A DNA stretch of 64,000 bases from Amphiscolops sp. MND2022 (Eukaryota), in NCBI GenBank assembly GCA_964187785.1, contig OZ076412.1:55614001-55678000 (forward strand). The letters are read 5' to 3'. Position numbers and translations under genes: made by a program. This document shows, piece by piece, positions 23,027 to 63,900 of the stretch. Under the pieces are notes generated by a model. That model ran no database searches, was not told the origin of the DNA, and saw only the letters and a list, made by a program, of their open reading frames with translations. The stretch's first letter is position 1. Every line of letters starts with the position of its first letter.

Positions 23027-23092
23027 ACTACTACTAGATGCAAATTTTCGAGCGTTTCGTTCTGAATGAACCCGTGCAATTTTAGAATTTTA

Positions 23093-26000
23093 ATGTCGCA
23101 GGATGCTCAGCTTTTCAGCTTACCATTTTTGAAACCGTGGTGGAGAAAAGCGAAGCAGGTTCTACTACGGTTGTTTGAAGCTAATACAGTTGATAGATTA
23201 CGTCGTCGACTGCATATACTAAGTCAATGCGGAATTCCTCATCTCAACAGAGACCCATTTGGCAATCTATGTACGTATTTGGAAGATTCGATCCCTCTTG
23301 CTGATCAAATTCACTTCCTTGAAAAAGTTTTCCCGACTATTCTATACTTGGTCCTCAATTTAGAAGAGCATCCTGAAGAATGGAGCGCCCTTACATGCCT
23401 GATGAGGAATCGAGGTAGCGAAGTGATTGTACGCAGACTTACCATTGCTTCGCTGTTGTCGACATCTTTTCTTTGTCTATTGCCTCAACAGTCACTCTGG
23501 CATCAAGAAATTCCGTACAATTTTGAACCTTTGTATCTAAATCTTCACACTGAGACTGCGCGAGAGAAATTAAAGTGCTTCATCAATTACTTCGATGTTC
23601 TTAGTCAGCAAATCCCCAATAATTCATATCTCGGTGCTGTCAAAATCACCCGACGTGTCCTGCCAGGTTGGTGTGCGTTACGCACAGACTTGCTTGAGGA
23701 CTCCAACAGAAATTTGTCGTAAGTGTACTTTCTCTGATTAAAGACAAAATATATATCTTTATTGTGAAAGAGAAAAAGCAATGTGTTGCAAAGAAGCTTT
23801 TCGATCATTTATGAGATCATCTTCAGTTTATCTAAAAAACAACAAGAGTATACAACATAAAATAAAGATATCTATCGTTAGCCATCCAAAGATTTCTTTT
23901 CAGGTCTTTCAAAGTGTGCAGAAATTCGAAATTGGAAGAATTCCCTAACGATGTTCTAAAGATAGGACAAATTTCCCGGGTCTTGGGACATCATGTATGG
24001 GAGCCTAACTGTACACCGGAGGACGTTTTGGTCTGTAGATCACCAGAAATACTTGGATGTTCATTCCTCTGTGAAGCGTTAGCGGATTCCGAAGCCCTTG
24101 AATTTAGTGGATGTAGTGCATTCTCCCAGACAAAAGGGGTGTCTTCATCTTTCGAGTTTGTTGCCCCAGTGACGCGCCAAACAAACATGAACTACTCACA
24201 TTTATGCGCAATCGATGCAATCAATTTCCAGGTAACTTGATGATCTTTTGTTGTCTCTTTGAAAACCTTACATGCCTATAAACAGTTTTCTTTGGTATAT
24301 AATACTTTATATAACTACAGCAATGTGCAGTTGTATTCATTTTGTTAACGGAAGCTTTTGAACTTTTAGTTTTTTTTCACACATGCTGATCACGACGTCT
24401 TAGAAGTTTGAAATGTTCACCAACAGTTGGCTTCGATCTCTCGTTTGTTGGTGGTGCTCTCAATTTCGTCGGGTTCTATTTTTAGGCAAGTGCTCCTAAT
24501 TTTGTCGGGTTCTATTTTATGAGGCTGTTTTAAGCGATGCAATCCACTGTATCCGTTTGTGTTGAGTTGGTTACACCTTTTGAAGTCTCATGTTGATCAA
24601 TAATCACCGTTTATTGTCAGCGATACATGGATAAGGCTCCATTTGGTTCGTATTTTTGTTGGTTTTACTGTCTTAGTCGAAAAACAGTTTTACGAACTTC
24701 GGCAAGATGCAAGCTTTTGTTTCAGGATCTCTGAAAGAGTAGAGCTTTCAGGAATGTTTGAATTTTTATTTCATGAAACAATGACTCCGCTTCCCCCTTT
24801 GAGCAACAACGAAGACTGACATCTAATATTGCGGGCGAAAACTTTGAAAGGGTACTATGTATTTTATCATGAAAGATATGCACACAGTGGATCCCGGATA
24901 TAAGAAACCCACTATAAAAATTACTCGCTTATAGTTAATTAGTATTCTGGCCACGCCTGCGAATTTAATTCCTTTTTAAACCCGTATATAAGAAACTTCG
25001 TTTTTGCGAACTTGAGGGTGCCCCCTTTTCGGTTTTCGGCACAGAAGTAAAAAATGACATTTTTGAACATGGGTTTCTTGATGCTTCGAAATATTGGACG
25101 TGGTTTTTGAGTTTGATGGGTCTCCCTTCAGGAGCTTCATTTGTGTACCCCTTTGTGTGTTCTCTTTTTCCGCGCTGTAAGTTTGTCTCAAAAATTTCAC
25201 AATAGTATCCCTTCGCATAATCAAAAGCTTTGCATTGTCCCCCGAACGGGTTGTTTACCTTTAATACGATCAGGATTTTTTTCATCCGAAGACAATTATG
25301 CTTAGAATTATTCAAGTGGAGTCGATTCTTCTGTTTTGCTGTAGTCGAGAAATGATTCAAAAGTGGCAATGAATGCATGAAAGTAGAATTACGACATTTT
25401 CTTATTATACTTTCTCTCAACTGAGTAGTAGTTGCAATCGACGTTTCGAGTCCACGCATTTGACCATGCATTTTTTAATGCTTGTTGTTTCGCCTTTTTG
25501 AGACTTTTTCGAAAATTTCATGGACAACTGTCATCCGGCACGGCGTCTTCTTCCATTGACACCAATATCTCCACTGCTTTGCGCCTCACCTTCGGTTGAA
25601 GCGTGATTCTGAAACCAAAAAGGACATGACTAATAATCTTAAGCTGTCAGTGTTATAAGTAGTGGGAACCAAAAATTGCGTTTATTCTTCTGTTTATTGC
25701 GCAATAAAATTGCTCTCAAAAAATTTTAATTGTCATCAAACTTTAATTTTCAAAAGAAAATTGCACTCATTAAAATCACTCATATGCAGCATTAACGTAA
25801 GCAATTACATTTTTCACGTTTTCACCAGCAAAATTTCGGCCATTTGCCAATATATATTTTTTTAATTTTGAGAATGAGCGTTCTATAATCGCATGGGATG
25901 AAGGACAATTCTGAAGAAACACATTGTTTCTGGGTCGCAGTCTTCTGTGGGTTCCACGACCTTCTTCAAATTGGGCATTTTATTCAAACGAGATTTGAGA

Positions 26001-29000
26001 TAAGAAACGATTTCAAATGCTGTGGGTTCGCGTTACCAGTAGACAATCGCCTTCAAACCCCAAAACAATGCGCCTTATCTTCAACCCCATGGTCCCTTTT
26101 GAATTTATGGAAGGCGGTATTTCGATGGTTTTCTAAAAGGAATTTCTGTAGCATGCAAATGTTTTCTAGCATAATTTGCAAGTTCCACAAGGAAGCACTC
26201 GGAACTCGTTTGGATAATTATTGGCAGCTAGTTGTGCTTTTGTTCGCATAGTAGCTACTTTTGGCATTTTTTTCTTAAAAAATAGTGTTAAAATTGATAA
26301 GTTGTACGTAATAATATAAAGAAAATAATACGTGCTCCTGGAATGTTTAATTTGGTCAAATAAGTAGTATAATGGCGTGATAGAAACTGGTTTGCCTTCT
26401 AAAACCACGTGTTGTACGTAACAATTATCTAAAAATTATATCCAAAAGGATTTGAGAATGAAATTGCAGCTAAGTTTTCAATGCATGTAAAATTACCGGT
26501 ATTGCACTTATTGCTTTTATTGCGTTTTCGTTCCCACTAGTTATAAGTCTGCGCTTCTTTTTTTTTCAATTCACACGAATTGACCAAAATAGTTATACAA
26601 AATTTTAAGGTGTCAAATTGGACCATTTGGCCCTGGGAACTGAACGATGAAAGTTGTTCCGTTGTTACGTTTTTTCAGCGTAACATATTACCGGGCGAGA
26701 CTAAAGGGTCCCCTTTCACTTTTTCTGCATTGACTTTTTGCAAAAAATTTTCAATGTCTCCAAAGGGTATCGCTTCAATTTTTTGATATTTTGCGAAATA
26801 TAATGGATTTTAAAAAATCCGAAAGGGTTCCCCTTTTAGCCCGCCGGTTCGGTCAAACTTCTGGGTTTTCCGGGTACTGTAGAAGAAAATAGTTACTTTT
26901 AGAGTTCAGTGCTCAAAAGAACTGTTGATGCAACAAAACTGGAAGTTTCTGTTTGAGTCAAACGTTGATTTGATTGATATTTATAGATGTTTAGATTATT
27001 GATTAGTTTGGTTTACCCTTGAATCTTTCACTTAGCTCTAGAACACCTCAAAACAACAGGTATCTTCCAAAAAATATATTCTTGACTTATCTTCGTTTTA
27101 TACCATTAAAACTAAGTGACCAAAATATCAGAAGACTAACCACCCATACTGATATTTTCAAGAATACAATTTGAAGTCCTTGTGCTATTTATGAGCCTTA
27201 AGTGGGGCGCCGACTTGATCCCGTCTTGTTTCATTCAATTTGAACTTTGTTTCCAGGGTATTCCCATTGAGAGCCAGTTCACAGAAGAATGTGTTTTGCG
27301 TGAGATTAATAAATGCTACATCGGTTTACTTCCTCAATCAAAGCTGCCACAGAGGAAAGTGAAACTGAATGCGCTGGCTAGATACGCTTCTAAACTGTCT
27401 TCCAGCATTTTCAAAGAAGCCAAATTTCAAGCTCAAACTTTACAATTCAGACAGAAAAGTTTGAATCGTCGCAAGGTTGCCGAGGATTTCGCAGATACCA
27501 TTATGGACACATTGGTGAAAGATTTACCAGTTGTTTTGAAACAAAGGGTGCCCATTGGATCAGGGTCGAGTCATAATACTTCTCCGAAAGATGGTGGATC
27601 TTATCTCAATTATTTGGAGGGTGTTACATTAACTCTAACTCCGCCAGATGACGAAAAAAGTAAAAGTTTGACGGTCGATGCGGAAAATTCAAACGAGCGA
27701 GACGTCAGTTTAAAGGCGCTCGAAGAGTTTTCTGATCTTTTCGTGTCGAATTTATTGCGTCTAGTCACCGATCAATTGTTTCCCCGAGCTACGAGTAGAA
27801 AGTCTATTTCGAAGCATCGAAGACGCGGGTCAAGTCGCAGTAACTCTTTGACACAAAGTTTCAGTCTATACGATATTGTGTACAGTGAAGGTGATGCTAC
27901 TGGTATACTAAAGCCAACCGCTGTGGGATTCCGTGACGAACAGAATTCCAACTTTTTCCTGGGCGACATAGAGGAAACTTCAGCTGACTTCGTGACTGAC
28001 ACGTCGGATTGGTCAAGTAGAGGAAGTGGCAAGTACAAAAGTAAACTGCCCTTGTCTAGTACATTGGCCGCTGAGACGTTTTTCAGGGGTAGGAAGTTCG
28101 CTTCTATACGAGAACAATTCTCAAATGTTCTCGCAACCCAGATTTTAGCCGAAGCTATTGCGTCATACATCAACACCCTTGCCAAGAAAAACAGCTCAAC
28201 TGAATCATCCTCTAGTCCTCGGCTGGAGTCCAGTCTGTCTGACGAAACACGGCGAGGCTCCAATATAAGTTCAGTTGAAGAATACGCTTATTTCTTGTCA
28301 GATAAAATTGTTTTTGATGCATATCAAACAATTTGTGGAAGACTGGCTCCGAAGGGGTCTGTGGATACGAGATACTCTGCCATGGAAGACGATCTGTACT
28401 CTTTACATTCCCAACAAACTAACTACTCTCGAAGCAGGAGAGGCAGTGGCACTCGAAGATCTGTCTCTAGAAGGAGGTCTTCTAATGTCAGTGTAGTATC
28501 GTCTCACACGATCAACGAAAGGCTCTACAGTTTCTTCGTCATTACTTTGTTCTTCAAGGTTTGGTCTCTGTTCATATTAATGGTCACCCAGTCGTTCAGC
28601 AGTCATTATAAAAGAAGCCATCGAGAGGACTCGGCCGCCACGACCAGTGCAATACCAATAGATGCTTCTGGTGACAAAAACAACTCCAAACGCAATTCTA
28701 TCGATTCGTGCCATGGTCTCTTGGAACACGACTTTGATGGCAGGTTGCGTAGTGTTACTTTGGAACAATCTGGTGCTGGATCCAATGAAGACAATGCCAA
28801 ACACCTACAGAAGTGTCAAAACCCACTCATAATTGACACCAAGTCCTTTAATTCCACTTTTTCTAGCACTGCTGGCAGTGTCGCCAACGAACTTTTGGAG
28901 GACGGCAGACGAGATCTAACTACTGTTTCCACTCAGACATTCGGTTGCACGTCGTTCGGGGGAGACTCACAGTTCAAGCTCTTTATTCTGTGGATCGCGG

Positions 29001-29224
29001 CTTCAATGGCCGGTGTTGACAGTGTTCTGTTTCACCCATACGGAGACAGTAAATTGTTGGAAGTTGAGAAAATGATCCACTTGGTTGTATCCAATGGACT
29101 CACGGTCGCTGATCTTTTTAGTTTACTGCTCAAGTATTGCAATTATATTGATCTATTCAAGTCCTATGATAGTAACACGGAACCCAAGCCCTTTTTTACA
29201 TTTGTAGAAAATCTTTATAACTAA
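23093..29224 (+). CDS. PARG-like (poly(ADP-ribose) glycohydrolase fold) protein with degenerate catalytic loop and about 550-aa internal insertion; exons ~23093-23718, 23904-24231, 27257-29224
   Basis: Phase-compatible GT-AG junctions (TC|gtaagt..cag|G; CAG|gtaact..ccag|GGT). PARG-like motifs: IASLLSTSFLCLLP..NFEPLY..EKLKCFINYF..KITRRVL; SPEILG..EALEFSGCSAFS..G; LCAIDAINFQ|GIPIESQFTEECVLREINKCYIGL; C-terminal TQTFGCTSFGGDSQFKLFILWIAAS..LTVADLFSLLLKY. The start codon or a further upstream exon is uncertain. Confidence 0.85.
25660..26539 (-). mobile_element. Internally deleted hAT DNA transposon (880 bp) with CGGBP1-like N-terminal remnant
   Basis: TIRs TAGTGGGAAC / GTTCCCACTA flanked by a perfect 8-bp TSD GTTATAAG (25652-25659 and 26540-26547). 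Minus-strand remnant MPKVATMRTKAQLAANNYPNEFRVLPCGT-CKLC..HRNTAFH resembles the CGGBP1/BED-type Zn finger. Confidence 0.8.
26690..27233 (-). mobile_element. HINE-like repeat copy in PARG-like intron 2, ending 24 bp before the splice acceptor
   Basis: GGGTCCC/GGGTTCCC units; TGAGCCTTAAGTGGGGCGCCGACTTGATCCCGTCTTGTT at 27195-27232 is the reverse complement of the family 5' end. Confidence 0.6.
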
Positions 29225-29630
29225 ATTATCTAAGTTTCAATATTCACAGGTGCTTTTGTACTTTCCCCATAACTTAATATAACGTATAGCAATTAAATAA
29301 TACATTCCATTTTAATTAAACCTCTTTTCTCAGTCGTTTTCCCCCATCATTTAGTTGATTAGCTCTTTCGTGGGAACTATTTTATTCGAAGTGTTTGTTC
29401 AAAAGTTGGACACTCATGTTGACGCAAAAAAAAACTTTCTTCAAGCTTGACTAGTATATATAATTTGCGAAAGGTAGTTGTTCATCCAATGCAACTGGCA
29501 TACCATTCAAAAAAAGCTGACAAAAGTTAGAACGTTGGTATATCTAGTACCAAGACCAAGACGTCTCAAGTCGGCGTAGTCTCAAGATTTCATGTTTCAA
29601 AGTGCAAAAAAGGCGCTCTCTGGACTAAAA

Positions 29631-30217
29631 AACAAGACGGGAACGTCTAAAGTCGGCGCTATATCTAAGGCTCAAAAAAGCGCTAAGTTTTTAAACTTGT
29701 AAAAGGGGGGACCCTTTCAGCTTTTTGAAAATCCAGTCTGTTGCAAAATATCAAAAAAATTGGACAATAAAAAATCCGGAATTTTTTTTGAAAAAACTTT
29801 CGAAAAAACGAAAAATGAGAATTTCGAAACAGTCTCACAGTGCCGAAAACTAGAGAGGGGGGACCCTTTGGGCTTTTTGAAACTTCGGTTTGCTGCAAAA
29901 TATCAAAAAAACTTGAAGGGGGGACCGTTTGGCGACAAAAGAAAATTCGAAAAAAAAGTCGCACAGTGCCGAAAAAAATTCAAAAGGGGGACCCTGTAGT
30001 TCCGTCCGGTTTTGTATCTTACGTTAAAAATTGAGTACACGAAAAGGGGGACCCTTTGCAGTAACTCAGATATGATTCCGCTTGCCGGTGCAGTACTTTT
30101 AGTAGTTCTGTAAAAAGTGTCCACTACGCATACATTCTGTGGTCTGACGAAAAAAAAAGAAAACAAAACTTGCCACTGTAATAGTCGGGCTCATTTTCTT
30201 CTAAAATGCGCCGACTA
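29631..30217 (+). mobile_element. HINE-like repeat copy, apparently full-length
   Basis: AACAAGACGGGAACGTCTAAAGTCGGCGC through TAGTCGGGCTCATTTT-CTTCT-AAAATGCGCCGACTA. Confidence 0.75.
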
Positions 30218-34200: not shown

Positions 34201-37200
34201 GCTGATGTCTCTGTCGGTCAGTGGCCAGTTATCGTCATCACATGTCCCAAACATGCCCAATATACTGTTCCTGGAAAAGAACCTATCGGCAAAATGAAAT
34301 TTTCCTCTCATATCAGGTATGTAACTCAGTTTTCGTATGTTTTTGATGTCCAACACAACATGGATCTTAGCCTGCGATGTGATCATAATCGGAGGACCCC
34401 GATTGAAAACTCATTTTTTGGCTCACGACGCTTATACATACCATTATCATGCTGCGTTAAGGTAACGAAATAAAACGGGAGTTTGAATAGTCAATAATGA
34501 AATCTTGAAAAAATTAACAATTGAAAGTTTTACCAACAGTTTCCTCATTTTAGGGTTCTTCGTCCACTTTTAACTTCGTGTTTCAAAGAGCCAATTTTAA
34601 CCTATCTACGTGCTGGTATTTTTCAGACTTCTGGTATTCTCAATCACAGTCATCAATAGAGTACACGTGGAAATAGCACGAGAGACCAATCCCCATAACC
34701 CCTTCTGGAGAGGAGAAGCAGTCAACACTTACGGACCTCTTTATACTCTCGACTGGAAACCCAAGTCTTTCTCTGAAGGACTCTTCATCATTCGAGTCAT
34801 TGCTACTGTAAGTGTGAATGATGAGATTTTCATCATGGCTTTTCGATAGCATCTTCGAGCAGTCCTTTGATTAAAGGAACCAACCATCCTTCATTTGATC
34901 AATTTTTTTCTTGAAACATTTCATATATGCGACAGTTTACTCTAACTCAAACATGGCAAAATCATTTGAATATGATCAAAAACAATTATTAAGAACACTC
35001 CTATCGATCTCACACTACGGAAAAATAATTGCAGAATTGATCGATTTTTAAAATAATTTTCTCTCCAAAAATTTAAAAGGGCCCTCTGAGCTCGCAAAAC
35101 GCTTTGTCCTTGCCAGAGTCAACAAGCCGGGGGTGGCCCAAGTCGTCACCCCGCTCCAGGTTTAATAATGTAAAGTATTTTAAATATGCAAAAGGACATT
35201 TCATAAACTTTACAGTGCCAAAAAATACCCCAAGGGATACGCATAAGACTCGAAGACCACTTTTTCTTCAACTGGAGACTTTCAAAAAACCAAAAATTGA
35301 GGAAATTTTTCAAAAAATTTTCGAAGAAATTTTTTGATGAAGATTTCCGGTAAGTCGCATAGGTTTTTCAAAAAGCCCGAAGCGTCCCTCCTTTTACAAT
35401 TTTCGGCATTGTGAGATTCTTCAAAATGATTATTTTTCGTCTTAAAATTAGGTTTTCTCAGCACGCTATATATTTTTTTAAGACCGGCGTCCATGTGACT
35501 TTTTTCTTCCTTTCATCAAAGCCCCCTCAATTTTTACTAGAAACGAAACGTTTTGCGAGCATAAAGGACTCCTCGGGGCTTTCGACACTATGCGACTTAC
35601 CGGAGACCTTCATTACACTTGCAATAAGCAAGTGTTATGTGAAAGTGCGGGCGCTTTTTTCCGAGCGACAACTCGTTTCACGCGTCAAGTCGCACAGTTC
35701 ACGCGTTCGTGGTCTAGTGGTAAGATGTTGGCTTTTCAACCTAGAGGTTTCGTGTTCGAGTATTCGAACCCAGAGTATTCCTTAGCAAAAGGTTCTCACT
35801 TTTTTTCGGCACTATGAGACTCCCCCCCTTTCAGCTTTGAGATTTTTTTCGAAAATTTTTAAATGTCGCCGAAGTGTTCTCCCTTTCATTTGTTTGATGT
35901 TTTGCAACAGAACGAATGTTAGAAAATCCCAAAGGGTCCGTCATGTACCGTACGGTCATGAACTTTGATTCATAGCCTCAGAAGAACAAATGATGAATCA
36001 TGCGCTAAACAGGGGGGACGAGAACAAAAGATTCTACAAACTAAATATCATTGACCACTTAATCACATAATTACATTTAAATGATGCTAATTGTAAACTA
36101 AATAGAAACCACGGACACAACCACACCGGGGGTACTACAAGCAAGTCGGTTCTAACCAATTCAATTGAGTTACCATCAAATTGGTTTTCAATGAAATTTC
36201 TAAGTCAGGAACCCAGATTCGCAACAGATTTTTCATCTCGTACAAAAGCCCGAACAACAATTGAAATGGATTCAAAACCCAGGTCTTGGACGTACTGATT
36301 GTACACTCTTTCGGGCTGGTTTGAAGACCAATCTAACAACTATATGACATGGTGACAAGGGTACTCTGACTTTTCAACGACTTGCATCTCAAACCGTTAT
36401 CTAAGAACTTTCAACATGGCTCAATAAGCCCGAGCCCAACAACCTGCAGCTCCTCTCGCAGCTCAGCTGCAACCTTTCATCAATCTACAGAGCTTTTGTG
36501 GCAAAGACACTGAAAACTTCAAACAATTCGAAAGACAACTTCGCAGTTCACTGGGTATAGCAGCAGTCGACGCAGCCCACCACCACCTCTATCTCCAATT
36601 GCATATGAATGGTAATGCGCTTGCATTCTTTGATCAGCTCACGGAAGCAACACGCAATAATTTCGAGAACGCACTGACAGCGCTCAGGAATCGCCACCTT
36701 AACCCCGACAGGGTCGAATCGTATAGATTGCAATTCAATACTCCAAAGAAACAATACACGATTCTCTAACGGAATTACAACGAATTGCTGGCCTTGCATT
36801 CCCAGACATTGATGCACAACCAGCCGCGAATGGCAATCCTGAGGTAGCAGCCGAAGACAGAGCCAACGAAAGAAACCGACGAGTGAGAGAACCATTCAAT
36901 AATGGGCTACCCAACAAATTGAAAAAAGTATCTTTTGACCCTACCAGACTCAACAACTGTTGATGATCTCTGTGAGCGTGCAGCAAGACGTGCAATGATC
37001 GATCAACACTATCCAGAAGATGACGTCGGTAGTGCCTTCAATGAAGTTTCACCCACCCAACTGGAAAGCCTTCTGAATACAATCTCAGATATGCAGAAAA
37101 CACAATCTTCCATGCAAAGAAAACACGAAGAAGAAATCGCTGCTCTGAAGGAGTCAGTCCAGACTCAACAACCACCACATCATCTTTCCAATAACATCAA

Positions 37201-40200
37201 AACTGGGGACGAGGCCACTACCAACCCAGTTTCCAGAATACATACGGACGATCGAACTACCAGATGGGACGCGGCGTCCAATATTCAGGACACAGAGGCA
37301 AACAACCTCGAGGAGGCTTCAATGGTAACAATCAACGCTTCTGGTGTCGCATCTGCGGCAAAGGGGGACATACAGCCTAGTTCTGCTACTATCGAGAACA
37401 ACCACAGAGGGATCAGTAACTCCCATTTGACCGCCAACCAATAAACTGAATGCGCCACCTTAACAATGTAAGTCAAATTCACTACCCAGCTCCAACAGTG
37501 AAAAACTATTCTACGTACCCCTAACTCTTGGAAAATCATCTCAACGCTTTTTGGTAGACACAGGTGCCTTCTCATCTGCTAATACTTCTAAGGTTCTTGA
37601 TACCATCAAAAAAGCTTCACCAAATTCAGTACGAAACGAAGAACTTCCTAGCACCCCTGTTGTAAAAGTGGCTAATGGACATTCAGTAAAAACGCTAGGT
37701 GCAATTGAAATTGATTTTTTACTTGGCAACCAGAATTTTAAAGAAAACTTCCTGCTTTTGCCCTATGTGAATACGCCAATAACGCTTACCTTTTTTCACA
37801 CAAAATAATATCACCATAAATCCCAAGGTATGTGAACTCTCGGTGAAAGATTTTACTTTCCAGTTGAACGAAATAACAGGCAATAATGGTCGAATACGCA
37901 GGATTTTTCGGAAAATTAAATTTGCCCTGCGAACAACTCACAAAATTAACATTAAACCCAGTTCAGAAGAAGTACACAAAGGTGCACTCAACAAATCCTT
38001 AGAATCTGAAAGCGTCGGGATTGTTGAACCCAATACTGGATTTGAAAAACGAACAGGGTTGTGCATTACGAGTTCACTTTCTAGACTACATAGTTCAACC
38101 ACAAGTCTAGATATTTTGAACTGTACACCGAATCATATAACTATACCCAAAAACACAATTGTAGCCCGCTTCAAAATATTGACACCCAAACAAGCCAAAT
38201 ATCTTTACCAAATCGCCCCTGCCCTTATTGCCTCTGACCCTTCTAAATCTATAAATGAGCTTGTAACCACTGAACCTACAACCGACCACATTCGTTGTGA
38301 CGATTTTTGGTTTCCCACCCCGGAAAATTGTCATGACCCGTCCAAGCTCACCCCCAGGCACGTAAAATCTATGACCGCTTATGTTCACTCAAGGAGGCGG
38401 AAAAAATGAATCCCCTGAAGGATGATACCAGCCGCAACAACTTTTTATCCAATTTTAAATGGTCAAAGTCAGTTCTGTCTAACGAATACCGCCAAACAAT
38501 CGAAGAAGTTTTATTAGAATACAATGACATTTTTGCTAGACACGAATTTGATATAGGAGGAAACGATACTTTCACAGTAAAATTGACTCCTGAACACCAT
38601 AATCCGATATATACACAGTCATCCTACGCCAAATCACCTACGAGAAGAAATTTTATCCAATCTTGCAGTAATGCACTATTATGGGTTGATCACTACTTTG
38701 CTTTATTCGAAGTATTCTAGTCCTCTTCGCGCATCGAAAACCTTCAGGTAAACTACGTTTACTTGTCGACTTACGGAAAATCAATCACCTAATCAGACAT
38801 GATTATGATAGGCACATTTTCCCAATAAGTACTCTTGCTGACGCAGGATCTCATCTGGCTGGAAAAAAATTGTTTGCAAAGCTAGATTGCAGCCATGTGT
38901 ATCAAGCACTCAAAATGTCTGACCCTCTGTCTGTACAACAATTGTCTTTCAACTTTGCGTCCCGCACCTTCACGTACCTGCGTATGGCTCAAGGTTTAGG
39001 TAGGTCAATGAGCGCCTTTAGCTCTTTAATGTGAAAGTATTTTGTTTCGTGTATTGCAAACGACCAATGCTTTCAGTATGTCGACGATCTAGGTACCGGT
39101 GCCAAAACTTGACGAACTTAACACTAATTTGCGCAGCATCTTTGATTGCTTTCGAGCATCAGCGTTGAAGCTCACGATGCATAAATGCGAATTCGGACTC
39201 TCAAATTTCGTTTCTAGGGAGCACAATTACTTCGAATGGAACTTCACCGAGCAAAGAAAAAGACAATTTTTTAGCACATCTAAAGCCACCAAAAACTACG
39301 AAATAAATCAAAAGATTGATCTGATTTTTTTCAATTTTTTCGCGCTTACCTTCCAAACCTCAGTGACAACCTTATACTGTTTTACAATCTCGTGCGATCC
39401 AACTCGCCAATAGTTCTCACCGCCGAACATCAAGAATCTTTCAAAAAGCTCTGCAAAAGCTTGACCAATGCTTGTGCGATGTCTTTACGATTACCTAAAC
39501 CGGATTTGTAATACGTTGTTCTCACAGATGCAAGCTATCACTCGGCAGGTTACGTATTGATGGTAGAAGACTATGTCTCAAATTCGGACAACTCACAAAC
39601 TAAATGATATGCTCCAGTCTCATTCGGCTCCAAAATTTTTAATCCAACACAACTGAAACTCTCAATCTATGCAAAGGAATTCCTCGCAGTTCATTTTGCT
39701 TTCGATGCTTTCGCCCACATTCTCTGGGAAGCAACTAAGCCTATTTCAGTACTCACTGACAACAGAAGTCTAACAAGATTCTTCCAAGCTATAACAATAC
39801 CTACACCATTATGGAAAGCTGTTGATCATGTTTTAAATTTCCGGTTTCTCCTTGGCCATGTACCTGGGAAAGCAAATATAGCCGCGGACTACCTTTCCAG
39901 AGTGAATATTGATCCTGAACAGAAACTAGTTTCAAAAATCTCGACATCCATGCCTTGCCGACAAGTAGAATATGGCTCCCACAATGCCCGACAATAGTCT
40001 AACTGCCTTGCAAAACTACGATGACGAGGACGACTATGACGAACAAGAAGTGGTCTTGGAATACTTCAAGGATTGTACACCGACAATCTCAGCGCTTCAG
40101 AAAGCCAATCCACTAGACACTTATGACCTACTCGGCAAGTGACCTTCAGAAAGCCAATCCACTAGACACTCATGACCTACAATCAGCACTTTTGAATATG

Positions 40201-43200
40201 CGCACAGAACAAAAACGAGAACCTGATTTGAGCGAGGTCCTTCGATGGTTTGAAACACAGCAACTACCAGACCTGAAATATTCCAGCACAGAACTACAGA
40301 AATACGCGAAACAATTTCCAAGATTGGTGCTACGCGATGGTATTTTTTTATGCACATTTTATGGACTCTACTGCAAATTTTATGGTCATACATGTAACGT
40401 TCTACATCACCAATTGGTAGTACCAAAACAACTACGTACAAAACTACTGTATAGAATCCACAACAGCAAATTCGGTGGCCATTTGGGAAAACAAGCAACC
40501 ATTTCTGAATTCAGAAAACTTTTATTTTCCTTACTTTTCCAAAATTTTACTTGAGTATATTCGGAATTGTTCTTCATGCTTGCAACTCAAACCAGCCAAG
40601 AAAAACTCAATCACTCCTCCAGTGCAGCCCCTAGCCTCCGAACATTGCTTTCCCGGAGAACTGCTACAAATAGACATAGTTGGGGAAATGCATCCTCCAG
40701 GAGGATATACTCACATTCTTACAGCTATTGATGTTTTTAGCCGATACTTATTTGCAATGCGCAAGCAGAACAAGTTGCGCAAGCTCTTTTCAAGCTTTTC
40801 ATGCATCATAGCTACCTTCCATCGAAAATACTGTGCGATCTTGGAACGGTCTTCACATCAGCTATGATGCGACAACTGTGCTTTGATAGAAATACAACTT
40901 CAGTATGCCACAGTGAAACATCCACAAACTATTAGAGTTCTAGAACGAAGTCACTGATCTCTCAAAAGAATTTTGAGCCTTAACGAAGATTCAGAATTCA
41001 AAGATTGGTATAATAATGTGGACATTGCAACTTTTGTCCACAATACGAGTAATCACACTTTCATCGGTTGTTCTCCAACCCTTCTTTTCCACGGGCGACA
41101 ACCCCTGAACCCCATTGACCTTCGATTCAATAATACCCACGTGGAAAAACCAACTCCAACCTTGGACTTCATCATTTATACACACTATAAAATGGAGACA
41201 ATATTCGTAAATGCTCACGAGAAAAACTTGCAAGCTTACCACAAGTATCGAGAAGTCTTCGACCGAAAAGCCAGAGCTCTCCCTCTAAAGCTGCACAGCT
41301 ATTGTCTACTGTTGAATCCAAAATTAATCTCACAAAATGATTCACTAACGAAATCAAATACTAAATGGCTTCCATTATACCGAGTCGAAAGTGATCACAC
41401 ATGGAAACTATATTATTCGCAAAGTAAATACCAATAACACACAATGTGTTCATAGGGTCAGCATCATTGGCTGAACCTGCTCTCTTTGACAAAGCTCTAA
41501 CCGACTTGGTAGATGATTCACCCCCGATCATAGGTGTTCCAAGCACCAATGATGCTATAATATCATTCGGATTACGAACGGCTAGAACAACAACTGCACA
41601 TCCAGTGGCTCCCCAGGCCATCCCTCTGCCTCAACCTCCAGGAAAAACGCCAACACTAGAAACACAAAATACCGAAACACAATTTCCACCGAATGATAAA
41701 CAACGAACTGGTGCTCACTTGGATTCAAGAGGTTTCCCCATATCACAAGATGAAACTTTCTACGTAGAAAGGACTTTACCTCAATCTGGAACGCAACCAA
41801 CTCAGTCTTCACAAACAATTGACACCAGAGATTACCTCACGGAAGAACGACAAGCATCATCGCAAAACAATTTCTTCAGTCAATGCCGCAGCGTATCACA
41901 ATCACACTCTCCCAGCACAACTGATGCGAGAAAAAAGAAAGCTCTTTTACAGCCCACACAAGACGCCCGTCTAGGGACCAATAGGGCCTATGAATTACGC
42001 AGGCAAATAAACCTCACACGATTCTACCAATCTCAACCCCAATCCCAACGCCAGCGCGATAATAATTCACGTTAACTTTCTAACATTTACTTTCATACGT
42101 ATACAATTTCATAGCTCTTTCAAATGAAAATATTTAGTTTCCAAAATTTCATGCTCAGATCATACTCTTTTCGGTCAATGCTTTCGACAGGTCACATCCT
42201 GTACCTCCCAACCAATATCCGCTCTAAAACTCTTCATCAACAAACTGACTATTGTCAAATATTGACTGAACTCACCATATCCTGTTCACCTTTCGGAACA
42301 ACCCTTGCCTCTTGAACAATCCATTCTTGACTCTTAAATTCAACGTCAATCATTATTCGAGCACATCACATCCTGTTCACCTTTGAATATATTGATTTGA
42401 CCGCTAAAGACAATCACACCACTCATCAGCGCCTCGAAAACCAAATTCGACATCCACTCCGAACATTCACTTTGCCTAATTGAGCTGGTCTCTTTCTCTC
42501 TCATTGAACACATAAACAAGCCCGTCGACAGCCCAATTGTTTCAACTTGTTTTACCAGGTTTGCAACTTTTAATTGCTCTTTTTCATTCCAGCAATTGCG
42601 AGTCTACCAATACTTCCACACATAATGAGATTATTTTCAACTACCATAGTAAAATCCTTCTTGCTAAATCGTTCGAATCAGTTCAACTTGTCTTACCCTA
42701 TCCTCAATTTGATGCAACTTTTGAGGAATATATTCAAAGCATCGCTAACAAAATAGATCAACTATGGAATCACCCGAACTATGGATGTGAACTCAACTAC
42801 AACAATATAACATCACTCAATTTCACAGCTAATTGGATACATCACGAAGTGGTGGCTGAACCTAGCCGTGTCTTATCTGACCTACACCGCTTCAAGTCAG
42901 AAGTTACACATCTCTTTCCGGATACGCTACCGCCAGTACATCGGAATAAAAGAGCAATCCCTCTCGTACTGGCTGCAGGAGCTGCCACTGGCATCTTTGG
43001 TTTAGGTTTTGGACTCAAGGATAAAATCTCCTGCACACTAGGGCGCATCTTTGACGGATGCAACAAAATTGCACAAGAAAACAGACACGCGATAGTGGAA
43101 ACGATCAATCATGTGAACTTTGTAAAATCAGCTTGGGTGGAAGTCCAGAACGCAACGAACGAGAAGCTTTTCATCGGAACTGAACTACGTGACCTCCGAG

Positions 43201-46200
43201 AAACCCAAATAAAATCATAAAAATACAACGCACCAACGCTGCCACTCTTCAATCACAGTTTTCCCTCCTCGAAGAAAGTATCAATTATATGCGAAACTGA
43301 CCAATTTCTATACATAAGAGAAGAAGCTAATCGCCATTTGAATTTTTTGAATTCGGTGCTTTCAGTAATATATAACTTGCGAAGCTATCGCACTAATCTC
43401 TACTCTTTTCGGATGGCAATCTTAGGATCCTCGGCAGCAATTAAAGAAGGCTTTCTACCTTTGTCATTGGTCCCGCGCGACGTGTTAAGTGATATTTTGC
43501 TGCAAGTTCTGCTGCAAACACATTCGAAAATCGGACGAAACCTTTTATCTATTCCGATTGAAAACGTGATGTCATATTATGAAACAGAACTAGTATCTAA
43601 AGTCATTTCAACAGATTTCGGACTACTTTTCACCTTATGTATTCCTTTTTCATCAGAATCAACCGCACAGACGTATGCCACGCTATTCCATTACCCATGC
43701 CACCAGACGAATCATTGACAGCTACAGTATGGGACCTAGGAACGGAATACCTTGCTGTCACCCAAACCGGTCATGAGGCTGCCCTCTTGACACTGTTCGA
43801 CTTGGGACAATGCATAGGCGCCCTGAGCTACTCAATTTGTTTTTCATCTTTCCCCATGGAACGTTCCATGGATTCTTGTTTAGCTACTCTCTTTTATAAG
43901 GATACTCTTGCAGCGCTAGAAGTATGTCAAATCCAAACAATCACTTTACCTGTGAAAGAAAAGGCACAATACCTTGTCGTTGGAAGATGGCTCATCTTGA
44001 GCCCCACCTCTGATTTCATCTTTACAGAATCTTATTCTTACCTCCAACACGCCGCCCTTTCTGTCAAATACCGCCCCGGATGCAAAGTCTATATCATCAT
44101 AATGAAGTGTGGTTTCGAGTTGCAAGGTCCCAACGTCCACCTACGATCAGATTGGTCATCATGTGCAGGCATGGAACCGGTCCAGTTGGATATACGCTTG
44201 CCTGACCCCGTTGCCTTTCTCTTTAACAAACTGCCACCTCTGGATGACCTCACACAGATACAGGACATCGACACGGCACGAGTCAAACTGATCACTGACG
44301 TACAAACAAAACTGATACAGGTACCAGAACTTAAACGGCGACATCTCGATACTTTGGCTCAGATTGCCGAACCCATTATTTCTAAAATGCCGACCTTACC
44401 GCCAACTTTGGAAGCAAAATTCAGTTACACTGTTAGTTGGACACCATATCTATGCTTCGGAACAGCCATTTTCGTTTTGTCAACAACAATACATTGTCTG
44501 ATGTCATATTCACTACACCGAATACTAAAATTCCATCGAAGATTTCCATTTCGGATGACTCTAAACAAGCGTTCTATCAAAGCTATACCAGTAACTCTGG
44601 TCGAAGATGAAGACTCTGAATACTTGAGAACACACCCCGACCACCTCATTTTCAAAAAAAGTTTCCTTCTGACTCGAGAGTTCATCACGGCCAAAATAGA
44701 TACTTTACCCCCTACTTTTTCTCTCAATACACACAACTCTTCATTGTACCCCCGCTTAAACAAGGAGTCGCCTATTTAACTGCTACCAAAATACAAAAAA
44801 AACGAACAAACTAGAAACTAAACTCTTTCTTTCTGACACCAATATAACAAAGGGTGTACTATTCGAATATAACTAACCAAACAAATAATACCTCTACATA
44901 ATCATAACACTGGTAAATATACTCAACTGAAACAGCTGTATAATCCAAAAGAAAAAAAACAGTAAGTTCAGCTCACATGCTCCACTCATTCTAAACTTGC
45001 CACGAGTGGGAATCGAGAATAACTTGGGCCTCTTATAGCCCAACCACAAATAGGCGACGACGAGAAGCACAAGCCAAGCATACAAACGGGGTGCTGATGA
45101 CACATTACCCTCACACTTGAAGGAGCCAACAGCTACTTTCACATCATCCTCCATCAGAACCGGCTTGCCGCCACAACACGCCCACGATAGGATGATACCA
45201 CCAAATGACTCCTCCCTCTGGACGACACATGGACCTGCGATGACACAAACACAAATCATCAGCATCACAACAGGTTTCAATACACAATTTCTCATCATGC
45301 TCATTTCAAGACAACTGAAAATGTTCAAAATGTTTACTCGATTCCTAAATATTTCCTAACTTGGCCAGTTAGAGAAATCTTTACTTCACCATCTTCGAGT
45401 CACGGAGCTCAGCAACATCCCAAAAAAATGTATCATCAAATACTTTATTGACTCATAAATCAAAAACAAAATATGAAAACATTAATTGCATCAAAATAGC
45501 TCATCATATCAATTCAATGTCCAAAACTAATTTCAAATTGATATTGTTCTTCATCGAATATGCCTGCCTCCACCTTAACTGATATCATCCATCATCCTAG
45601 TGGAAAACAAACAATCGCCCTCTAAAAAAAAAACAAAAAAACAACTATGTCGAGAAAAGATACTACTTGACGGGGGCTAACTCCAATCAATGTTCTTTCA
45701 GGCTCTCCAAAAAAATAAAAACCTCATCGAAAGAGAAATGTCTTATTGTCTCTTCACAAAAAAAAATATTTTTTCACTCCATTGGACCGTCTTATAATCT
45801 AATATTTGCGTACAATGCCTTGAATTTCTAACCACTTAATGGGGCTCTTACATAGCTCAGTAACAATTCCACAGCTTTTGCAGTGTTTTAACACCCTCTT
45901 CCCGACTGTGCAGTCATTAAATTCAGTTTTGGAACCTATTTTCTAACCTTGTGCCTGTCAGTTTTGGGGCATTGTTCAATCTACTGTACAAAAGCCCGCA
46001 ACAACAATCAACTGTATTACGATCATTCATACCCCTCCAACTTCGCACATTGTCATTAATTGCTTTAACACTACCTTCAGACACAAGGTGAACATAGAAA
46101 TCATTATACGCGCTACGACACCACCACCACAATTCGCTCCTAAGATGCAGTTTAAATTTTGTGTACAAAAGCCCTGATGAAATACATTCTTTATGACCCC

Positions 46201-49200
46201 ACCTTCCTTGAACCCCGACCAAAATGCTTAATGCATTGTGCTACTATCCACTTCTGAGAACCCTAAACTTCCATCGCTTTTTATATTTAACTACCTTCCA
46301 ATTCATTTCAGAGCTATAAGTAACATATTTTATTCAAGTTGTCATCTGTTCTATTATGATATTTCGGAACATTTATATTACAAAATAATGATGGTACTCA
46401 CTCAATTGGTTTTATTGCGACGCTGCAGCCTCCCAAACGACTTCTTCCTCTTCTTCCTGCCTACTCGTCCATCACTCCCTTCTCTCCTCCCAGATGGCAC
46501 CATCCACTCCGTTGTTCGGCATAGGTTGGCAGGCTGAGACGGCGGTATCAATCTTCGAAGTCAATAACGCTGCCCCTTTAGTTGGCTCATTCATCTCCTT
46601 ATCCACTTCAGGTATTCCTGACACTGTCAACACCAGATGTCCCACGTTCTTTTGAAACACTACAGTATCCCCTGGCCTTTGCACCACAAGACGAAATCCA
46701 GTCACGTCATTACGCTAAAAAGGACACATCTACATAAAAAGAAGACCCACACCATAATCAATACCCAAATCTTTCACTCACCTCAAATTAATCACTGAGC
46801 TCCTTCATCGTCCATCTTCTTCTGATGAAGAAACGGGTCGCTGTTGCACTACCAGTTAAGAAGGCCCAGAGTTTTACTCCACGTATCAAAGTTGCCATGA
46901 CTGGCTTCTCCGGATACCCGTCCTCATGGGGACCTCGGAAGCTGGGCCCCTCGGCTAACAAAATGAGCAGATCATCTAGTTGCCCTGTGGTGAACCCCCG
47001 TGTCCAAAAATGCTTTTGAGAGTTTGAGAGCCTGCCATGCTCCCTGACATAAACCCCCTCCCAGATTCGTCCACCAAACTCAGACCAGACTTTGTGATTC
47101 TCCGGTTCACATCCAAAGCGATCGCCCATCTCATCGAGCCTCCTGGCAGCCTATCTCAGCCTCTAAAACATGCCACGCACACTATTTGTTTTATATTACA
47201 CAAGTCAAAATATTACCACCAAATATAAATGACTACATGGAGTTCTTCCTCTTTGTAGCCGGCAAGCGGTTCTCACCTCACATGCCATCTCAACAGCCTC
47301 CTCGGGAATCCTCTCTGCAACCACGTCAATCCGAGACACCATCACCTCCCACAACTTCTTGGCATCATCATTAGCAGAACTCATTATATCTGAAAAGGTT
47401 ACACGATGACAACATGCACATGCAACAACGACCAACATCATACAGCTACAATCGACAATTTTTTCCCATAATAGCGGGTAGTTTCATGTACCGTACGGTC
47501 ATGAACTTCGATTCATAGCCTCAGAAGAACAAATGATGAATCATGCGCTAAGCAGGAGGGACGAGAACAAAAGATTCTACAAACTAAATATCATTTCATT
47601 GACCTTTTAATCACATAATTACATTTAAATGATGCTAATTGTAAACTAAATAGAAACTACGGACACAACCACACCGGGGCTACTACAAGCAAGTCGGTTC
47701 TAACCTATTCAATTGAGTTACCATCAAATTGGTTTTCGATGAAATTTCTAAGTCAGGAACCCAGATTCGCAACACACATTTTTCATCTCGTACAAAAGCC
47801 TGAACAATTGAAATGGATTCAAAACCCAGGACTTGGACGTACTGCTTGTACACTCTTTCGGGCTGGTTTTAAGACCAATCTAACAACTATATGACAGTCC
47901 CTTTTTCCAGATTTTTCGGTACAATGAGACTGTAAAATTTTCTCATTTTGTTTTTTCTCGAAAATTTTTCGAAATTCTCCAAACGGTCCCCCTTCAATTT
48001 TTTGAAATTTTGCAACAGAATGGATGTTTAAAAATCTCTAAGAGCCTCCTTTTACAGTTTTCGGCATTGTGAGATTTTTCAAAAGGAAATATTTTTGTCT
48101 TAAAATTAGGTTTCTCAGGGCCCAGCACTCTATATCCGATTTTCGTTTTTTAAAGACCGGTGTTTTTTCTATGCGACTGTTTTAAATTTGTTTTCATTGA
48201 AGCCCCCCTCAATTTTAGAAGAAACGAAACGTTTTGCGAGCGTAAAGGACTCCTCAAGGTTTTCGGCACTACGCGACTTACCTGAGACCATCGAAAAATA
48301 TTTCGAAATTTTTTTCTTCTCAAATTTCTGTTTTTTTTAAACGTTTTCCGTTGAGAAAGATGGATTTTTTGCTGTTTCCAGTTGGGGAAGAATGTTTTTT
48401 GAGACTTGTGTGTATCCCTTCAGGTATTTTTTGGCGTTGTAAAATTGATCAATTGTTAACATTATTGTCCTTTTACCCTTGGTTGTCCGTATGATGCTGC
48501 TTATTTAGTTTTCTTTTGAAAAGTTCGCAACTTTCTCTGCAACTGTTTGCGAAGCACGGCTCGATTCATCCAAAAGCACGGTGTTTAAAGGTTCGATTCA
48601 TGAATCACATGACTACATACTTTTCTCTTCTCAACAGGATGATTTTGGAAATCAGCGTACTGTAGTACAACCCTTCTCCATGGACGGAAGTGCTCCGTCT
48701 TTGCCACCGGTGGCGTCTTTCATCATTGCCTCAAATCTCACAAAAGGCGCCAAGGTTCTCTTCTGGACAGCCCATGCTTGTTTCATCACTTGTCTGCTGC
48801 TCCTCAGGTTCCGATTGGCCCTTATGAGAAGTAAGTTATTTAGCATAGTAAAATTGTGAGTGGGTGATTACAAAACATTCTCACTTTCTCTTTTAAGGAA
48901 TGAACGTCTTTCGGGTGCCTTTTCTGGGGTATCTTCTGGAGAATTTGACGCTTTACACAAGCTTTGACCAGTTGTTCAAACCTCTTGTTTTCTGGCAACT
49001 CTGGGCTGCTTATGGTAATTATTATTTTTAATGGAATCAATTTTTGTTGAATTAAATAGACTATTGAAGTTTCTATTTAACCCTGAATAGCATGTTCGAT
49101 TTTGCGAATTTTCCAAAATTTTGGAATTTTTTTCAACCGTTAATATCCCCCATATCTCCCAACTACTCATACGGAGAAATGAATTATAGCGCGTTTGAAA

Positions 49201-57347: not shown

Positions 57348-57803
57348 ACCATACCATGAATTGCTAAAAATTTTCTCTGGAAACAAGCTGTATCTTTATT
57401 TCTCTGGAAATTTTTTTTACATCATGCTCATGTTTGTGAAGTAATTTCAAATTTTGGATAACTTATGCTCTAGCTAATTTAAAATATTATCTTTCATTGT
57501 GAACCCAAGACACCACTGAAAGAGTTCAGAAAACATTGAAACTTTTGCTTCATTAGGCTTTCAAAACTTTTTCATTTCCCCACACTTTTCATACTCTAAC
57601 GAAATATTAAGAAACCTTGCTGAATAACAATTCGTTGGATTTTTTTTAAAACTGTGGAAAAGGTTAAAGAGCCAAACATTGTAAAGATTGAAGCTCAAGA
57701 ACAGTTATCCATTCTTTTCAATAATCATTATGCTGCTTGAACTGTTGAGTTTTTCACTCAATCAACCCGCCACTGTTCGATGAGTTAGTTTCTGGTAGTT
57801 TTA

Positions 57804-59911
57804 AACAAGACTGGAACGTCTAAAGTGGGCGCTATATCTAAGGCTCAAAAAGCGCCTATATCTAACATTTTAGGATATGCTCAGGAGGTTTTTAATGAAA
57901 GTTTCAGTTTCGAAACATCTAAGGGTGCCTTTCGTGCACGGAAAACGGTTCAGAAGTTCGGATAGCGTGCTGTAACAAACGCAAGCGCTTTTTTCGATCC
58001 TACGTCTTTTCCCCAGAAAAACGCAAATTACTTCGCATAAAACGTGAAAAGGTCGGATATAGCGCTTTACTCCGTGTATTACGTCAAAATTTCAGCTAGT
58101 ATTGAAAAAAATTATTTGTGGGTATATATCAAGAAAACCTCATTTCAGACTAGAGAATTTAATTTCTCTCATAGTGCCACAAAAATTAAAAGTCGAGACT
58201 CTTTGGGCTTTTTGAAACTCCAGTTTGTTGCAAAATGTCAAAAAATTTGAAGGGGACCCTTTGGAGATTAAAAAAATCGAAAAAGTTGCGTTGTACGGAA
58301 AAACTCAAAAGGGGGCTATAGTCTCGCCGGTTTTGTATCTTACGTTAAAAATGGAATAAATGAAAGGGGGACGCTTTACACTAACTTGAAAAGTTTGAAA
58401 GTTTTATTTTCTTGAACGTATGCATAATACAATATATTGCAGTTATCAAAATATTGAAGTAACAAAACGTCCAAGCAGGACAGAAAAGGAGCATAATCAG
58501 CTCTTCGAGTTTCTGCCCTGGACATTAGAGAACCAAATTCAGACCAACTCAAACTGATTCATTTATTATTCACAGTCACTAATTTTTCCACGAAAAAAGT
58601 CATCAATTATTCTTTAGTTAGTGTTATAGATCCAGCAGTTTCTCACGAACAGCGACCAACTTTTTTATTGGAAGAATAATGCGAAAAGGTCACTACTATC
58701 TGTTATATAAAGCCTTTTTAGGTTTTTCAGGTATGTTTTGATTTGCCGCTGTGACATGGTTAACGGTAGTCACATGGTAAACTTTCGGCACCCGTTTTGA
58801 ATAAAGGTAACACCTTTGCAATTTTCAGACATTCAGGAAAGAACTGTTTTTCAATGCAGTTATTAAAACTTCCCACCAAATGTTTTGCAATTATTGGTGA
58901 ACAACTTTCTAAAATTTCGTTACTGATGCCATCGTGACTACTGCTTTTCGCTTTTGTTTTTTAAACTCGTAACTATTTTAGAAACTTCCAATTCACTCGT
59001 GTAGTTCAAGACCATTGACTTCTCAAATTTGTCACTTCATATTTGTGTTGAGCAGGAGGAATAGACGAGGCCAATTGGTCCAATGGCTGTGAAAAATTGG
59101 TTGATCTCCAGGTCAGGAAGGTTCACAGCAGGTTGATCATTCCTTCTGTAACTTTTCAAGTTTCGATAAATCATTTTTGCGCTTGGATGCGTTTCCGCTA
59201 GCGGGTCCAGTACTTTAGTAGTTCTGTTAAAAGTGTCCACTACGCATACATTTTGTTATCTGACGAAAAAAACGCTGGGATAAAGAGATTGTTTATGTTG
59301 AAAAACTTGACCATTCGCTTGTACAGAAGTTTCTCGAAAATTTTACTAAGGGAACGGTAGTTACATGGTTAACTTTCGGCACCCGTTTTGAATAAAGGTA
59401 ACACCTTTGCAAGTTTCAGACATTCAGGAAAGAACTGTTTTTCAATGCAGTTATTAAAACTTCCCACCAAATGTTTTTCAATTATTGGTGAACAACTTTC
59501 TAAAATTTCGTTACTGATTCCATCGTGACCACTGCTTTTCTTGTTTTTTAAACTCGTAACTATTTTAGAAACTTCCAATTCATTCGTGTAGTTCAAGACC
59601 ATTGACTTCTCCAATTTGTCACTTCATATTTGTGTTGAGCAGGAGGAATAGACGAGGCCAATTGGTCCAATGGTTGTGAAAAATTGGTTGATCTCCAGGT
59701 CAGGAAGGTTCACAGCAGGTTGATCATTCCTTCTGTAACTTTTCAAGTTTCGATAAATCATTTTTGCGCTTGGATGCGTTTCCGCTAGCGGGTCCAGTAC
59801 TTTAGTAGTTCTGTTAAAAGTGTCCACTACGCATACATTTTGTTATCTGACGAAAAAAACTAGTCACTATAATATTCGTGCTTTTTTCCTTAAGGGAAAA
59901 TGCGCCGTCTA
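57804..59911 (+). mobile_element. Expanded HINE-like element containing duplicated LINE fragments
   Basis: Family 5' end at 57804 and 3' hairpin-like end AAAATGCGCCGTCTA at 59897-59911; the internal AAAGTGTCCACTACGCATACATT block is shared with the 30113 copy. Confidence 0.55.
58763..59858 (-). mobile_element. Two tandem copies (587-bp period) of a LINE EN-RT linker fragment
   Basis: ORFs at 59037 and 59624 are offset by 587 bp; EVSKIVTSLKNKKSSGHDGISNEIL..FPECLKLAKVLPLFKTG. Confidence 0.85.
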
Positions 59912-63700: not shown

Positions 63701-63900
63701 NNNNNNNNNNNNNNNNNNNNNNNNNNNNNNNNNNNNNNNNNNNNNNNNNNNNNNNNNNNNNNNNNNNNNNNNNNNNNNNNNNNNNNNNNNNNNNNNNNNN
63801 NNNNNNNNNNNNNNNNNNNNNNNNNNNNNNNNNNNNNNNNNNNNNNNNNNNNNNNNNNNNNNNNNNNNNNNNNNNNNNNNNNNNNNNNNNNNNNNNNNNN
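63701..63900. other. Assembly gap (200 N)
   Basis: Run of N. Confidence 1.

Follow-up and report, generated by a model that had tools for sequence, protein, structure and literature searches.

In the 64,000-nucleotide stretch of contig OZ076412.1 of Amphiscolops sp. MND2022 that we analyzed as a whole (hereafter the window), positions 35941-47896 are occupied by a decayed 11.96-kb LTR retroelement of the Ty3/Gypsy type, which carries an env-like gene and, on its opposite strand, a small intron-containing gene with features of the JmjC/cupin family. The element is bounded on the plus strand by a 5' LTR of 409 nt (35941-36349) and a 3' LTR of 413 nt (47484-47896) that are 94% identical, and the pentamers abutting it (35936-35940 and 47897-47901) agree at 4 of 5 positions and may represent a target-site duplication. 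No Rfam family or tRNA was found in the window.

Organization of the retroelement

The region directly following the 5' LTR (36350-37444, plus strand) starts with TGG, as part of the primer-binding-site region, and contains gag-like ORF pieces that are assigned by position only; no significant Pfam family was detected, although pieces of this region are conserved in one sister element (locus L005). The pol gene (37464-41437, plus strand) displays the order protease, RT, RNase H, and integrase of the Ty3/Gypsy type, with Pfam matches to RT_RNaseH (1.5e-10), Integrase_H2C2 (8e-6), and rve (4e-5), while RVT_1 (0.0016) and Asp_protease_2 (0.0077) remain below cut-off because the gene is fragmented. 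Indeed, pol is split over at least nine ORF pieces in all three frames, with roughly seven frame changes and at least one in-frame stop. It is followed by a 209-codon ORF of unknown function (41446-42075, plus strand), which has no Pfam hit but is conserved in sister elements, with 35% identity by tblastn to L006 and a 54% identical stretch in L009.

The env-like gene (42537-44779, plus strand) exhibits an R-x-K-R site followed at once by a hydrophobic stretch as well as a C-terminal membrane-anchor-like stretch, and is broken at least twice, by one in-frame stop and one frame change relative to the open 631-codon homolog in L006. Neither Pfam nor PDB sequences returned a match for this gene, and the same holds for the L006 homolog. 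A spacer devoid of convincing ORF and about 68-70% identical to L004, the closest sister element, extends from 44780 to 46401 and separates the env-like gene from the end of the antisense gene (46402-47384, minus strand). Finally, about 100 nt (47385-47483) lie between the start codon of the antisense gene and the 3' LTR, and hold both the polypurine-tract region of the element and the candidate 5' UTR or promoter-proximal region of the antisense gene. This is the best-conserved stretch between the window and L004 in this region (85%, against 58-68% for the exons), while the 3' LTR is about 78% identical to the LTR of L004.

The antisense gene and its conservation in sister elements

The initial annotation had proposed that three minus-strand segments (47384-47277, 47162-46782, and 46714-46412) join through two phase-0 introns into a JmjC-like frame carried by the element, and our analysis confirms this observation. 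Both intron 1 (47276-47163, 114 nt) and intron 2 (46781-46715, 67 nt) start with GT, end with AG, and are phase 0, and the three peptide stretches on which the JmjC-like assignment had been based are all present. The gene comprises three exons and about 255 codons, but the copy in the window is a pseudogene with two premature stops and one frameshift as compared with relatives. The possible third stop of the initial annotation lies after this frameshift, and its C-terminal reading is out of frame: the conserved basic tail of the relatives continues in another frame and the gene ends at 46402 and not at 46412. AATAAA hexamers are located at 46416-46411 and 46334-46329 on the minus strand.

Homologs of the gene lie antisense at the same place in five further loci (L004, L005, L006, L007, and L009) from three public assemblies with different flanking genes (a LINE-like RT gene, Aldedh, and Copine). 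In L004, L006, L007, and L009, env and integrase homologs are found downstream on the other strand, whereas L005 is an internally deleted copy that still keeps the gene. Furthermore, the divergence of the antisense gene (36-70% amino acid identity to the window) tracks that of env (38-76%). Among 1.84 billion representative proteins, only 11 true relatives were found, all unnamed fragments because prokaryote-style gene callers split the gene at its introns, and none was a longer cellular JmjC protein, while a word-based search with the exon-3 piece returned only the ORF of the window itself. The location of the gene inside the LTR pair, its recurrence at the same place in other loci, its co-divergence with env, and the absence of a longer cellular JmjC protein among these relatives make very unlikely the possibility that the segment is a host gene, or a one-off transduced host fragment, merely lying next to or inside this copy. 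Nevertheless, not every homolog is shown to be element-borne, as the homologous locus L008 has no env or integrase within 6 kb, and another, L001, has a long same-strand ORF upstream that does not look like an LTR.

Comparison of the window with L004 over 254 codons gives pN of 0.24 against pS of 0.70, that is, a dN/dS of about 0.14 with synonymous sites saturated, and a dN/dS of 0.44 was obtained with L005, indicating purifying selection. Among the six frames of exon 2, the proposed frame has the lowest pN/pS (0.24, against 1.3-1.75 for four others and 0.33 for the codon-complementary frame) and the fewest stops, which led us to reject coding on the plus strand. Exon 2 aligns without gaps at 67.5% identity while the introns are 45-54% identical. 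Regarding intron 1, exon 1 is conserved in L004, L005, and L006, and a GT donor and an AG acceptor sit at the matching places in L004. Intron 2 is confirmed by the relatives P0006 and P0009, which lack it: across the junction, P0006 has exactly the length of the spliced window model and P0009 differs by a few residues. Exon-2 ORFs of the other relatives end just past this point, and intron 2 is bounded by GT..AG in L005 and by GC..AG in L004. Although the frame of this copy is interrupted and its pieces have no Pfam hit, a chance pattern in decayed noncoding DNA is refuted by these data, together with the existence of homologous ORFs in many contigs. The shared introns also fit the established logic, put forward in the initial annotation, that introns in antisense orientation survive reverse transcription, even though splicing is here inferred without RNA data.

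Predicted fold and putative function of the antisense gene product

The residues proposed to bind the metal and 2-oxoglutarate are kept among the sequences covering the respective columns. The first His of the His-x-Asp motif is found in 24/25 sequences, the Asp in 22/25, and the distal His in 6/7, all three being present in the window copy, while a Lys located 19 residues after the first His, within a G-x-K-x-W motif, is kept in 21/24 sequences, the Trp in 23/24, and a Tyr in 22/22. A MAFFT alignment that misplaced the exon-3 fragments was discarded in favor of another one.

Membership in the JmjC family (PF02373, Cupin clan, with Cupin_8 PF13621), on the other hand, is only partly shown. The three stop-free exon pieces of the window do not hit any Pfam family, and of 25 family members only P0006 hits JmjC, at an E value of 0.017 and 16 bits against a cut-off of 24, while P0009 hits Cupin_2 at an E value of 0.014. 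There was no JmjC or Cupin_8 match above threshold, and neither phmmer nor HMM profiles of the family found anything relevant among PDB sequences. A first AlphaFold model was too poor (pLDDT of 54) and gave no Foldseek match below an E value of 0.1, although most of its listed matches were already JmjC proteins. A second model, of P0006, has a pLDDT of 60.9 overall and 77-86 in the core, and its best Foldseek match in the PDB is PHF8 (E value of 9.3e-4 and probability of 1.00), followed by KDM2A, KDM7A, PHF2, and JMJD6 (E values of 2e-3 to 1.5e-2 and probabilities of 0.96-1.00). The match to the fold is however weak, with TM-scores of only about 0.3 and 13-20% identity in the structural alignments, and it does not show whether the triad residues superpose. 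As in the matched enzymes, the model appears to contain a double-stranded beta-helix core with a helical insert between the fourth and fifth core strands, but the protein, with about 255 residues, is smaller than known JmjC catalytic cores and is devoid of PHD, F-box, CxxC, or other reader domains. "JmjC-like" is thus a statement about fold and motifs and not about proven membership.

An alternative that we consider possible but less likely is that the gene is a genuine element-borne antisense accessory gene whose product is not a JmjC-type oxygenase but a generic or novel small beta-rich protein, or a noncatalytic cupin, acting for example as a regulator of element transcription or RNA handling, like the antisense proteins of plant Gypsy elements or deltaretroviruses. 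The absence of any profile match above threshold, the marginal Foldseek E values, the close ranking of non-JmjC cupins such as HppE, and the short length of the protein are in line with this view. Conversely, conservation is near-invariant at exactly the His-x-Asp, Lys, and distal His positions that a metal/2-oxoglutarate site needs, JmjC proteins fill the top of the Foldseek list from the second model, and the two subthreshold Pfam hits are both cupin-clan families.

Altogether, the interpretation that we favor, with moderate confidence, is that the lineage of this element has long carried, just inside the 3' LTR, an antisense accessory gene encoding a protein built around a minimal double-stranded beta-helix of the JmjC/cupin kind, with a conserved His-x-Asp...His metal triad, a conserved Lys where JmjC enzymes bind 2-oxoglutarate, and a basic tail, seen in relatives, that looks like a nuclear localization signal. 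We infer that it is an Fe(II)/2-oxoglutarate-dependent oxygenase made from its own antisense transcript, which would start in or next to the 3' LTR, and that it would act in the nucleus to the benefit of the element. Since the best structural matches are the PHF8/KDM7/KDM2 demethylases, the most likely action would be the removal of repressive methyl marks from histones on element chromatin, and less likely the modification of RNA-processing proteins in the manner of JMJD6, but this role, as well as that of anti-silencing demethylase or hydroxylase suggested in the initial annotation, remains pure inference. More tentatively still, a whole clade of env-bearing Gypsy-type retroelements may encode its own JmjC-type demethylase, expressed from a separate spliced antisense transcript, as a chromatin eraser used as an anti-silencing device.

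Relationship to other accessory genes of retroelements

Antisense additional ORFs are known between pol and the 3' LTR of plant Ty3/Gypsy elements (Retand, Grande, and RIRE2; PMC11963269), where they are likewise located just inside the 3' LTR and present in most copies and across diverged lineages, the Grande protein being reported as nuclear. These ORFs mostly encode a TRP28 domain, whereas the gene described here belongs to a different protein family, has introns, and resides in an element with an env-like gene. No Pfam hit to TRP28 (Transposase_28, PF04195) or bZIP was found in any member. Antisense genes at the 3' end of an env-bearing retroelement are also known in deltaretroviruses (HBZ of HTLV-1 and APH-2 of HTLV-2; PMC11963269); they are presumably expressed from the 3' LTR and spliced, and encode nuclear bZIP-type regulators. 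Notably, Ty3/Gypsy elements of Phalaenopsis have fixed an Fe(II)/2-oxoglutarate oxygenase gene as an extra ORF, proposed to counter host control of the element (PMC9289625), but this is an AlkB m6A RNA demethylase and not a JmjC-like cupin, and no antisense placement or introns are given for it. The functional idea of an anti-silencing role stems from host JmjC proteins such as Epe1 of fission yeast, which opposes H3K9-methyl heterochromatin (PMC6576747, PMC7192584), and from transposon-encoded anti-silencing factors, of which VANC of the Arabidopsis VANDAL elements, a DNA transposon protein that is not an oxygenase, is presumably an example.

Extra genes fixed in LTR retroelements are rare and point to the host controls that an element must overcome. 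In the literature that we could find, a conserved, intron-bearing, JmjC-like oxygenase gene in an env-bearing element has not been described. If its product is an active demethylase or hydroxylase, it would be a direct example of a retroelement carrying a chromatin or protein modifier to counter silencing, and would also add a very divergent, minimal branch to the JmjC superfamily.

An interrupted antisense gene inside an LTR retroelement

On the minus strand, the segments 47384-47277, 47162-46782 and 46714-46412 translate as proposed in the initial annotation, and the two gaps that separate them (47276-47163 and 46781-46715) begin with GT, end with AG, and both lie between codons. The frame is broken in this copy, and comparison with relatives allowed us to count two premature stops and one frameshift. 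The third, doubtful stop put forward in the initial annotation lies after this frameshift. The conserved Lys/Arg-rich tail of the relatives continues in another frame of the window, so that the gene ends at 46402. AATAAA hexamers lie at the end of the ORF and about 70 nt beyond it.

The gene is located between two direct repeats, 35941-36349 and 47484-47896, that are 94% identical. TGG directly follows the first repeat, and the flanking 5-mers agree at 4 of 5 positions. Between the repeats, on the plus strand, Pfam profiles find a weak aspartyl protease, a weak RVT_1, RT_RNaseH (1.5e-10), and the integrase zinc-binding and core domains, in that order, which is the Ty3/Gypsy order, although pol is split into at least nine ORF pieces in all three frames. 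Downstream lies an env-like gene (42537-44779, plus strand) with an R-x-K-R site followed at once by a hydrophobic stretch and with a C-terminal anchor-like stretch. This gene is broken at least twice relative to an open 631-codon homologue in L006, one of the loci carrying a relative of the antisense gene. As it has no Pfam or PDB sequence match, its designation as env rests on position and features. Between integrase and env, a 209-codon ORF (41446-42075, plus strand) is conserved in L006 and in a further locus, L009 (35-54% identity), with no known domain. The start codon of the antisense gene, hereafter the cargo, is about 100 nt from the 3' LTR. A strongly negative GC skew (-0.17 to -0.29) extends over the whole element on its sense strand (36000-48000), cargo region included, and ends sharply at the 3' LTR.

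The rest of the window holds an open 821-codon ORF (18295-20760, minus strand) with reverse transcriptase (RVT_1, 8e-27) and endonuclease domains, a LINE-type retrotransposon ORF2 that looks uninterrupted, as well as large exons of a poly(ADP-ribose) glycohydrolase (PARG) gene with helical and macro-fold domains (23066-23722 and 27182-29224, plus strand), which constitute the host gene context and whose homologues in the database are unnamed. A dispersed, SINE-like short repeat of about 150-350 nt occurs at about 596-939, 15217-15555, 22631-23034, 26690-26838, 29626-30194, 35829-35949, 47952-48074 and 57791-58339. Copies sit on both flanks of the element, and 35511-35611 resembles 48192-48292 at 84%. 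The same repeat also occurs at positions 1334-2071 of L004, a sister locus, which shows that assembly ERZ25074608 is from the same or a near species. A run of 200 N is found at 63701-63900.

Conservation of the gene and of its introns

A search of 1.84 billion representative proteins with the longest stop-free piece of exon 2 yielded only 12 hits, one of them spurious, and a profile search added a few more. All are unnamed fragments of 74-270 residues from ENA metagenome-style assemblies and Logan contigs. Most of these fragments end a few residues past the exon 2/intron 2 boundary, as expected if a prokaryote-style gene caller ran into a shared intron. Two Logan proteins, P0006 and P0009, run uninterrupted through the exon 2-exon 3 junction, and P0006 has exactly the length of the spliced window model across it, which confirms intron 2. 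Exon 1 is conserved in L004, L006 and another sister locus, L005, and L004 has a GT donor and an AG acceptor at the matching places for intron 1, and GC..AG for intron 2.

Comparison of the window with L004 gives a pS of 0.70 (saturated; 0.80 in exon 2), a pN of 0.24 and a dN/dS of about 0.14 over 254 codons, while the ratio is 0.44 with L005. As a control, the frames of exon 2 were compared: the proposed frame has a pN/pS of 0.24 and the fewest stops, while four other frames give 1.3-1.75 and the codon-complementary frame gives 0.33. Furthermore, exon 2 aligns to L004 without gaps at 67.5% identity, while the introns are 45-54% identical with gaps.

The cargo as a component of the element clade

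The contigs of relatives were examined with flanks of 1.5-6 kb only, which was enough to see the neighbours of the cargo. In L004, the order is LTR, cargo (antisense), spacer and env, with a cargo identity to the window of about 53-70% (aa) and an env identity of about 74-76% (aa), or 89% at the DNA level over the last 1 kb. The similarity to L004 is mosaic, since the 3' part of env is 89% identical while the spacer, cargo and LTR are only about 70-78% identical (window 43529-44542 versus 45199-47897), which suggests either recombination between element sublineages or very different rates of change. In L005 (2294-6376), one large internal deletion has removed most of pol and env, of which only a remnant of the env end is left, but the LTR, the cargo (about 56-77% aa identity) and the protease/RT-proximal part are kept, so that this copy looks like a non-autonomous derivative that retains the cargo. 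In L006, L007 and L009, env and integrase homologues lie on the opposite strand downstream of the cargo, with cargo identities to the window of 38-49%, 36% and 39-54% (aa) and env identities of 60-66%, 38-40% and 46-65% (aa), respectively. In L009 (1-6738), a unit of about 2.64 kb holding exon 2 of the cargo is moreover repeated three times in tandem, at 95-98% identity, upstream of the complete cargo-env-integrase arrangement.

Two homologues are not shown to be element-borne. L008 has no env or integrase within 6 kb, and in the Logan contig L001 a long, low-complexity ORF without Pfam hit (positions 1-780; 286 residues called, running over the locus end) lies about 600 nt upstream of the cargo homologue on the same strand, reflecting either a different gene structure or a host-gene relative. 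The flanking genes of the five sister loci differ (a LINE-like RT gene, Aldedh, Copine), and these loci come from three assemblies. The cargo is therefore an old, co-diverging component of this element clade.

Predicted fold and possible role of the product

Across the family, the first His is kept in 24/25 sequences, the Asp two residues later in 22/25, the Lys and Trp of a Gly-x-Lys-x-Trp strand 19 residues on in 21/24 and 23/24, an upstream Tyr in 22/22 and the distal His in 6/7. The window copy has all of these residues. The relatives end in a basic tail that looks like a nuclear localisation signal. Sequence profiles, however, do not prove JmjC membership: the window pieces, searched exon by exon and not as a joined spliced protein, hit no Pfam family; of 25 members, only P0006 hits JmjC (E 0.017, 16 bits for a cut-off of 24) and only P0009 hits Cupin_2 (E 0.014); and family HMMs find nothing among PDB sequences.

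Structure prediction was carried out on P0006, a natural uninterrupted relative, and gives a weak match. A first AlphaFold model was poor (pLDDT 54), and Foldseek gave no match below E 0.1, although most of the listed matches were JmjC proteins. With a better-aligned input, the model reached a pLDDT of 60.9, and 77-86 over residues 50-125. With this model, Foldseek on PDB places PHF8 first (E 9.3e-4, probability 1.00), followed by KDM2A, KDM7A, PHF2 and JMJD6 (E 2e-3 to 1.5e-2), and then by other cupins such as HppE, but TM-scores are only about 0.3. The viral structure library gave only weak cupin, JmjC and AlkB-type matches. We interpret the product as a predicted minimal double-stranded beta-helix of the JmjC/cupin kind, probably a 2OG oxygenase, while membership of the curated JmjC family is not demonstrated.

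Antisense extra ORFs between pol and the 3' LTR are known in plant Gypsy elements (Retand, Grande and RIRE2, mostly with a TRP28 domain) and in deltaretroviruses (PMC11963269), and an AlkB 2OG oxygenase ORF is known in orchid Gypsy elements (PMC9289625). In contrast, no report of JmjC-like cargo in an LTR element was found in the literature examined, which was not exhaustive.

The antisense orientation lets the gene keep its introns through reverse transcription of the sense RNA and may also let it be expressed as its own unit. The 100 nt between the start codon and the 3' LTR is the best-conserved stretch between the window and L004 (85%); it overlaps the polypurine-tract region and may hold the 5' UTR or promoter-proximal signals of the gene. 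By inference only, we propose that the product may be a nuclear Fe(II)/2OG oxygenase that favours the expression of the element, the most likely mode being demethylation of repressive histone marks and the alternative a JMJD6-like hydroxylation of RNA-processing proteins.
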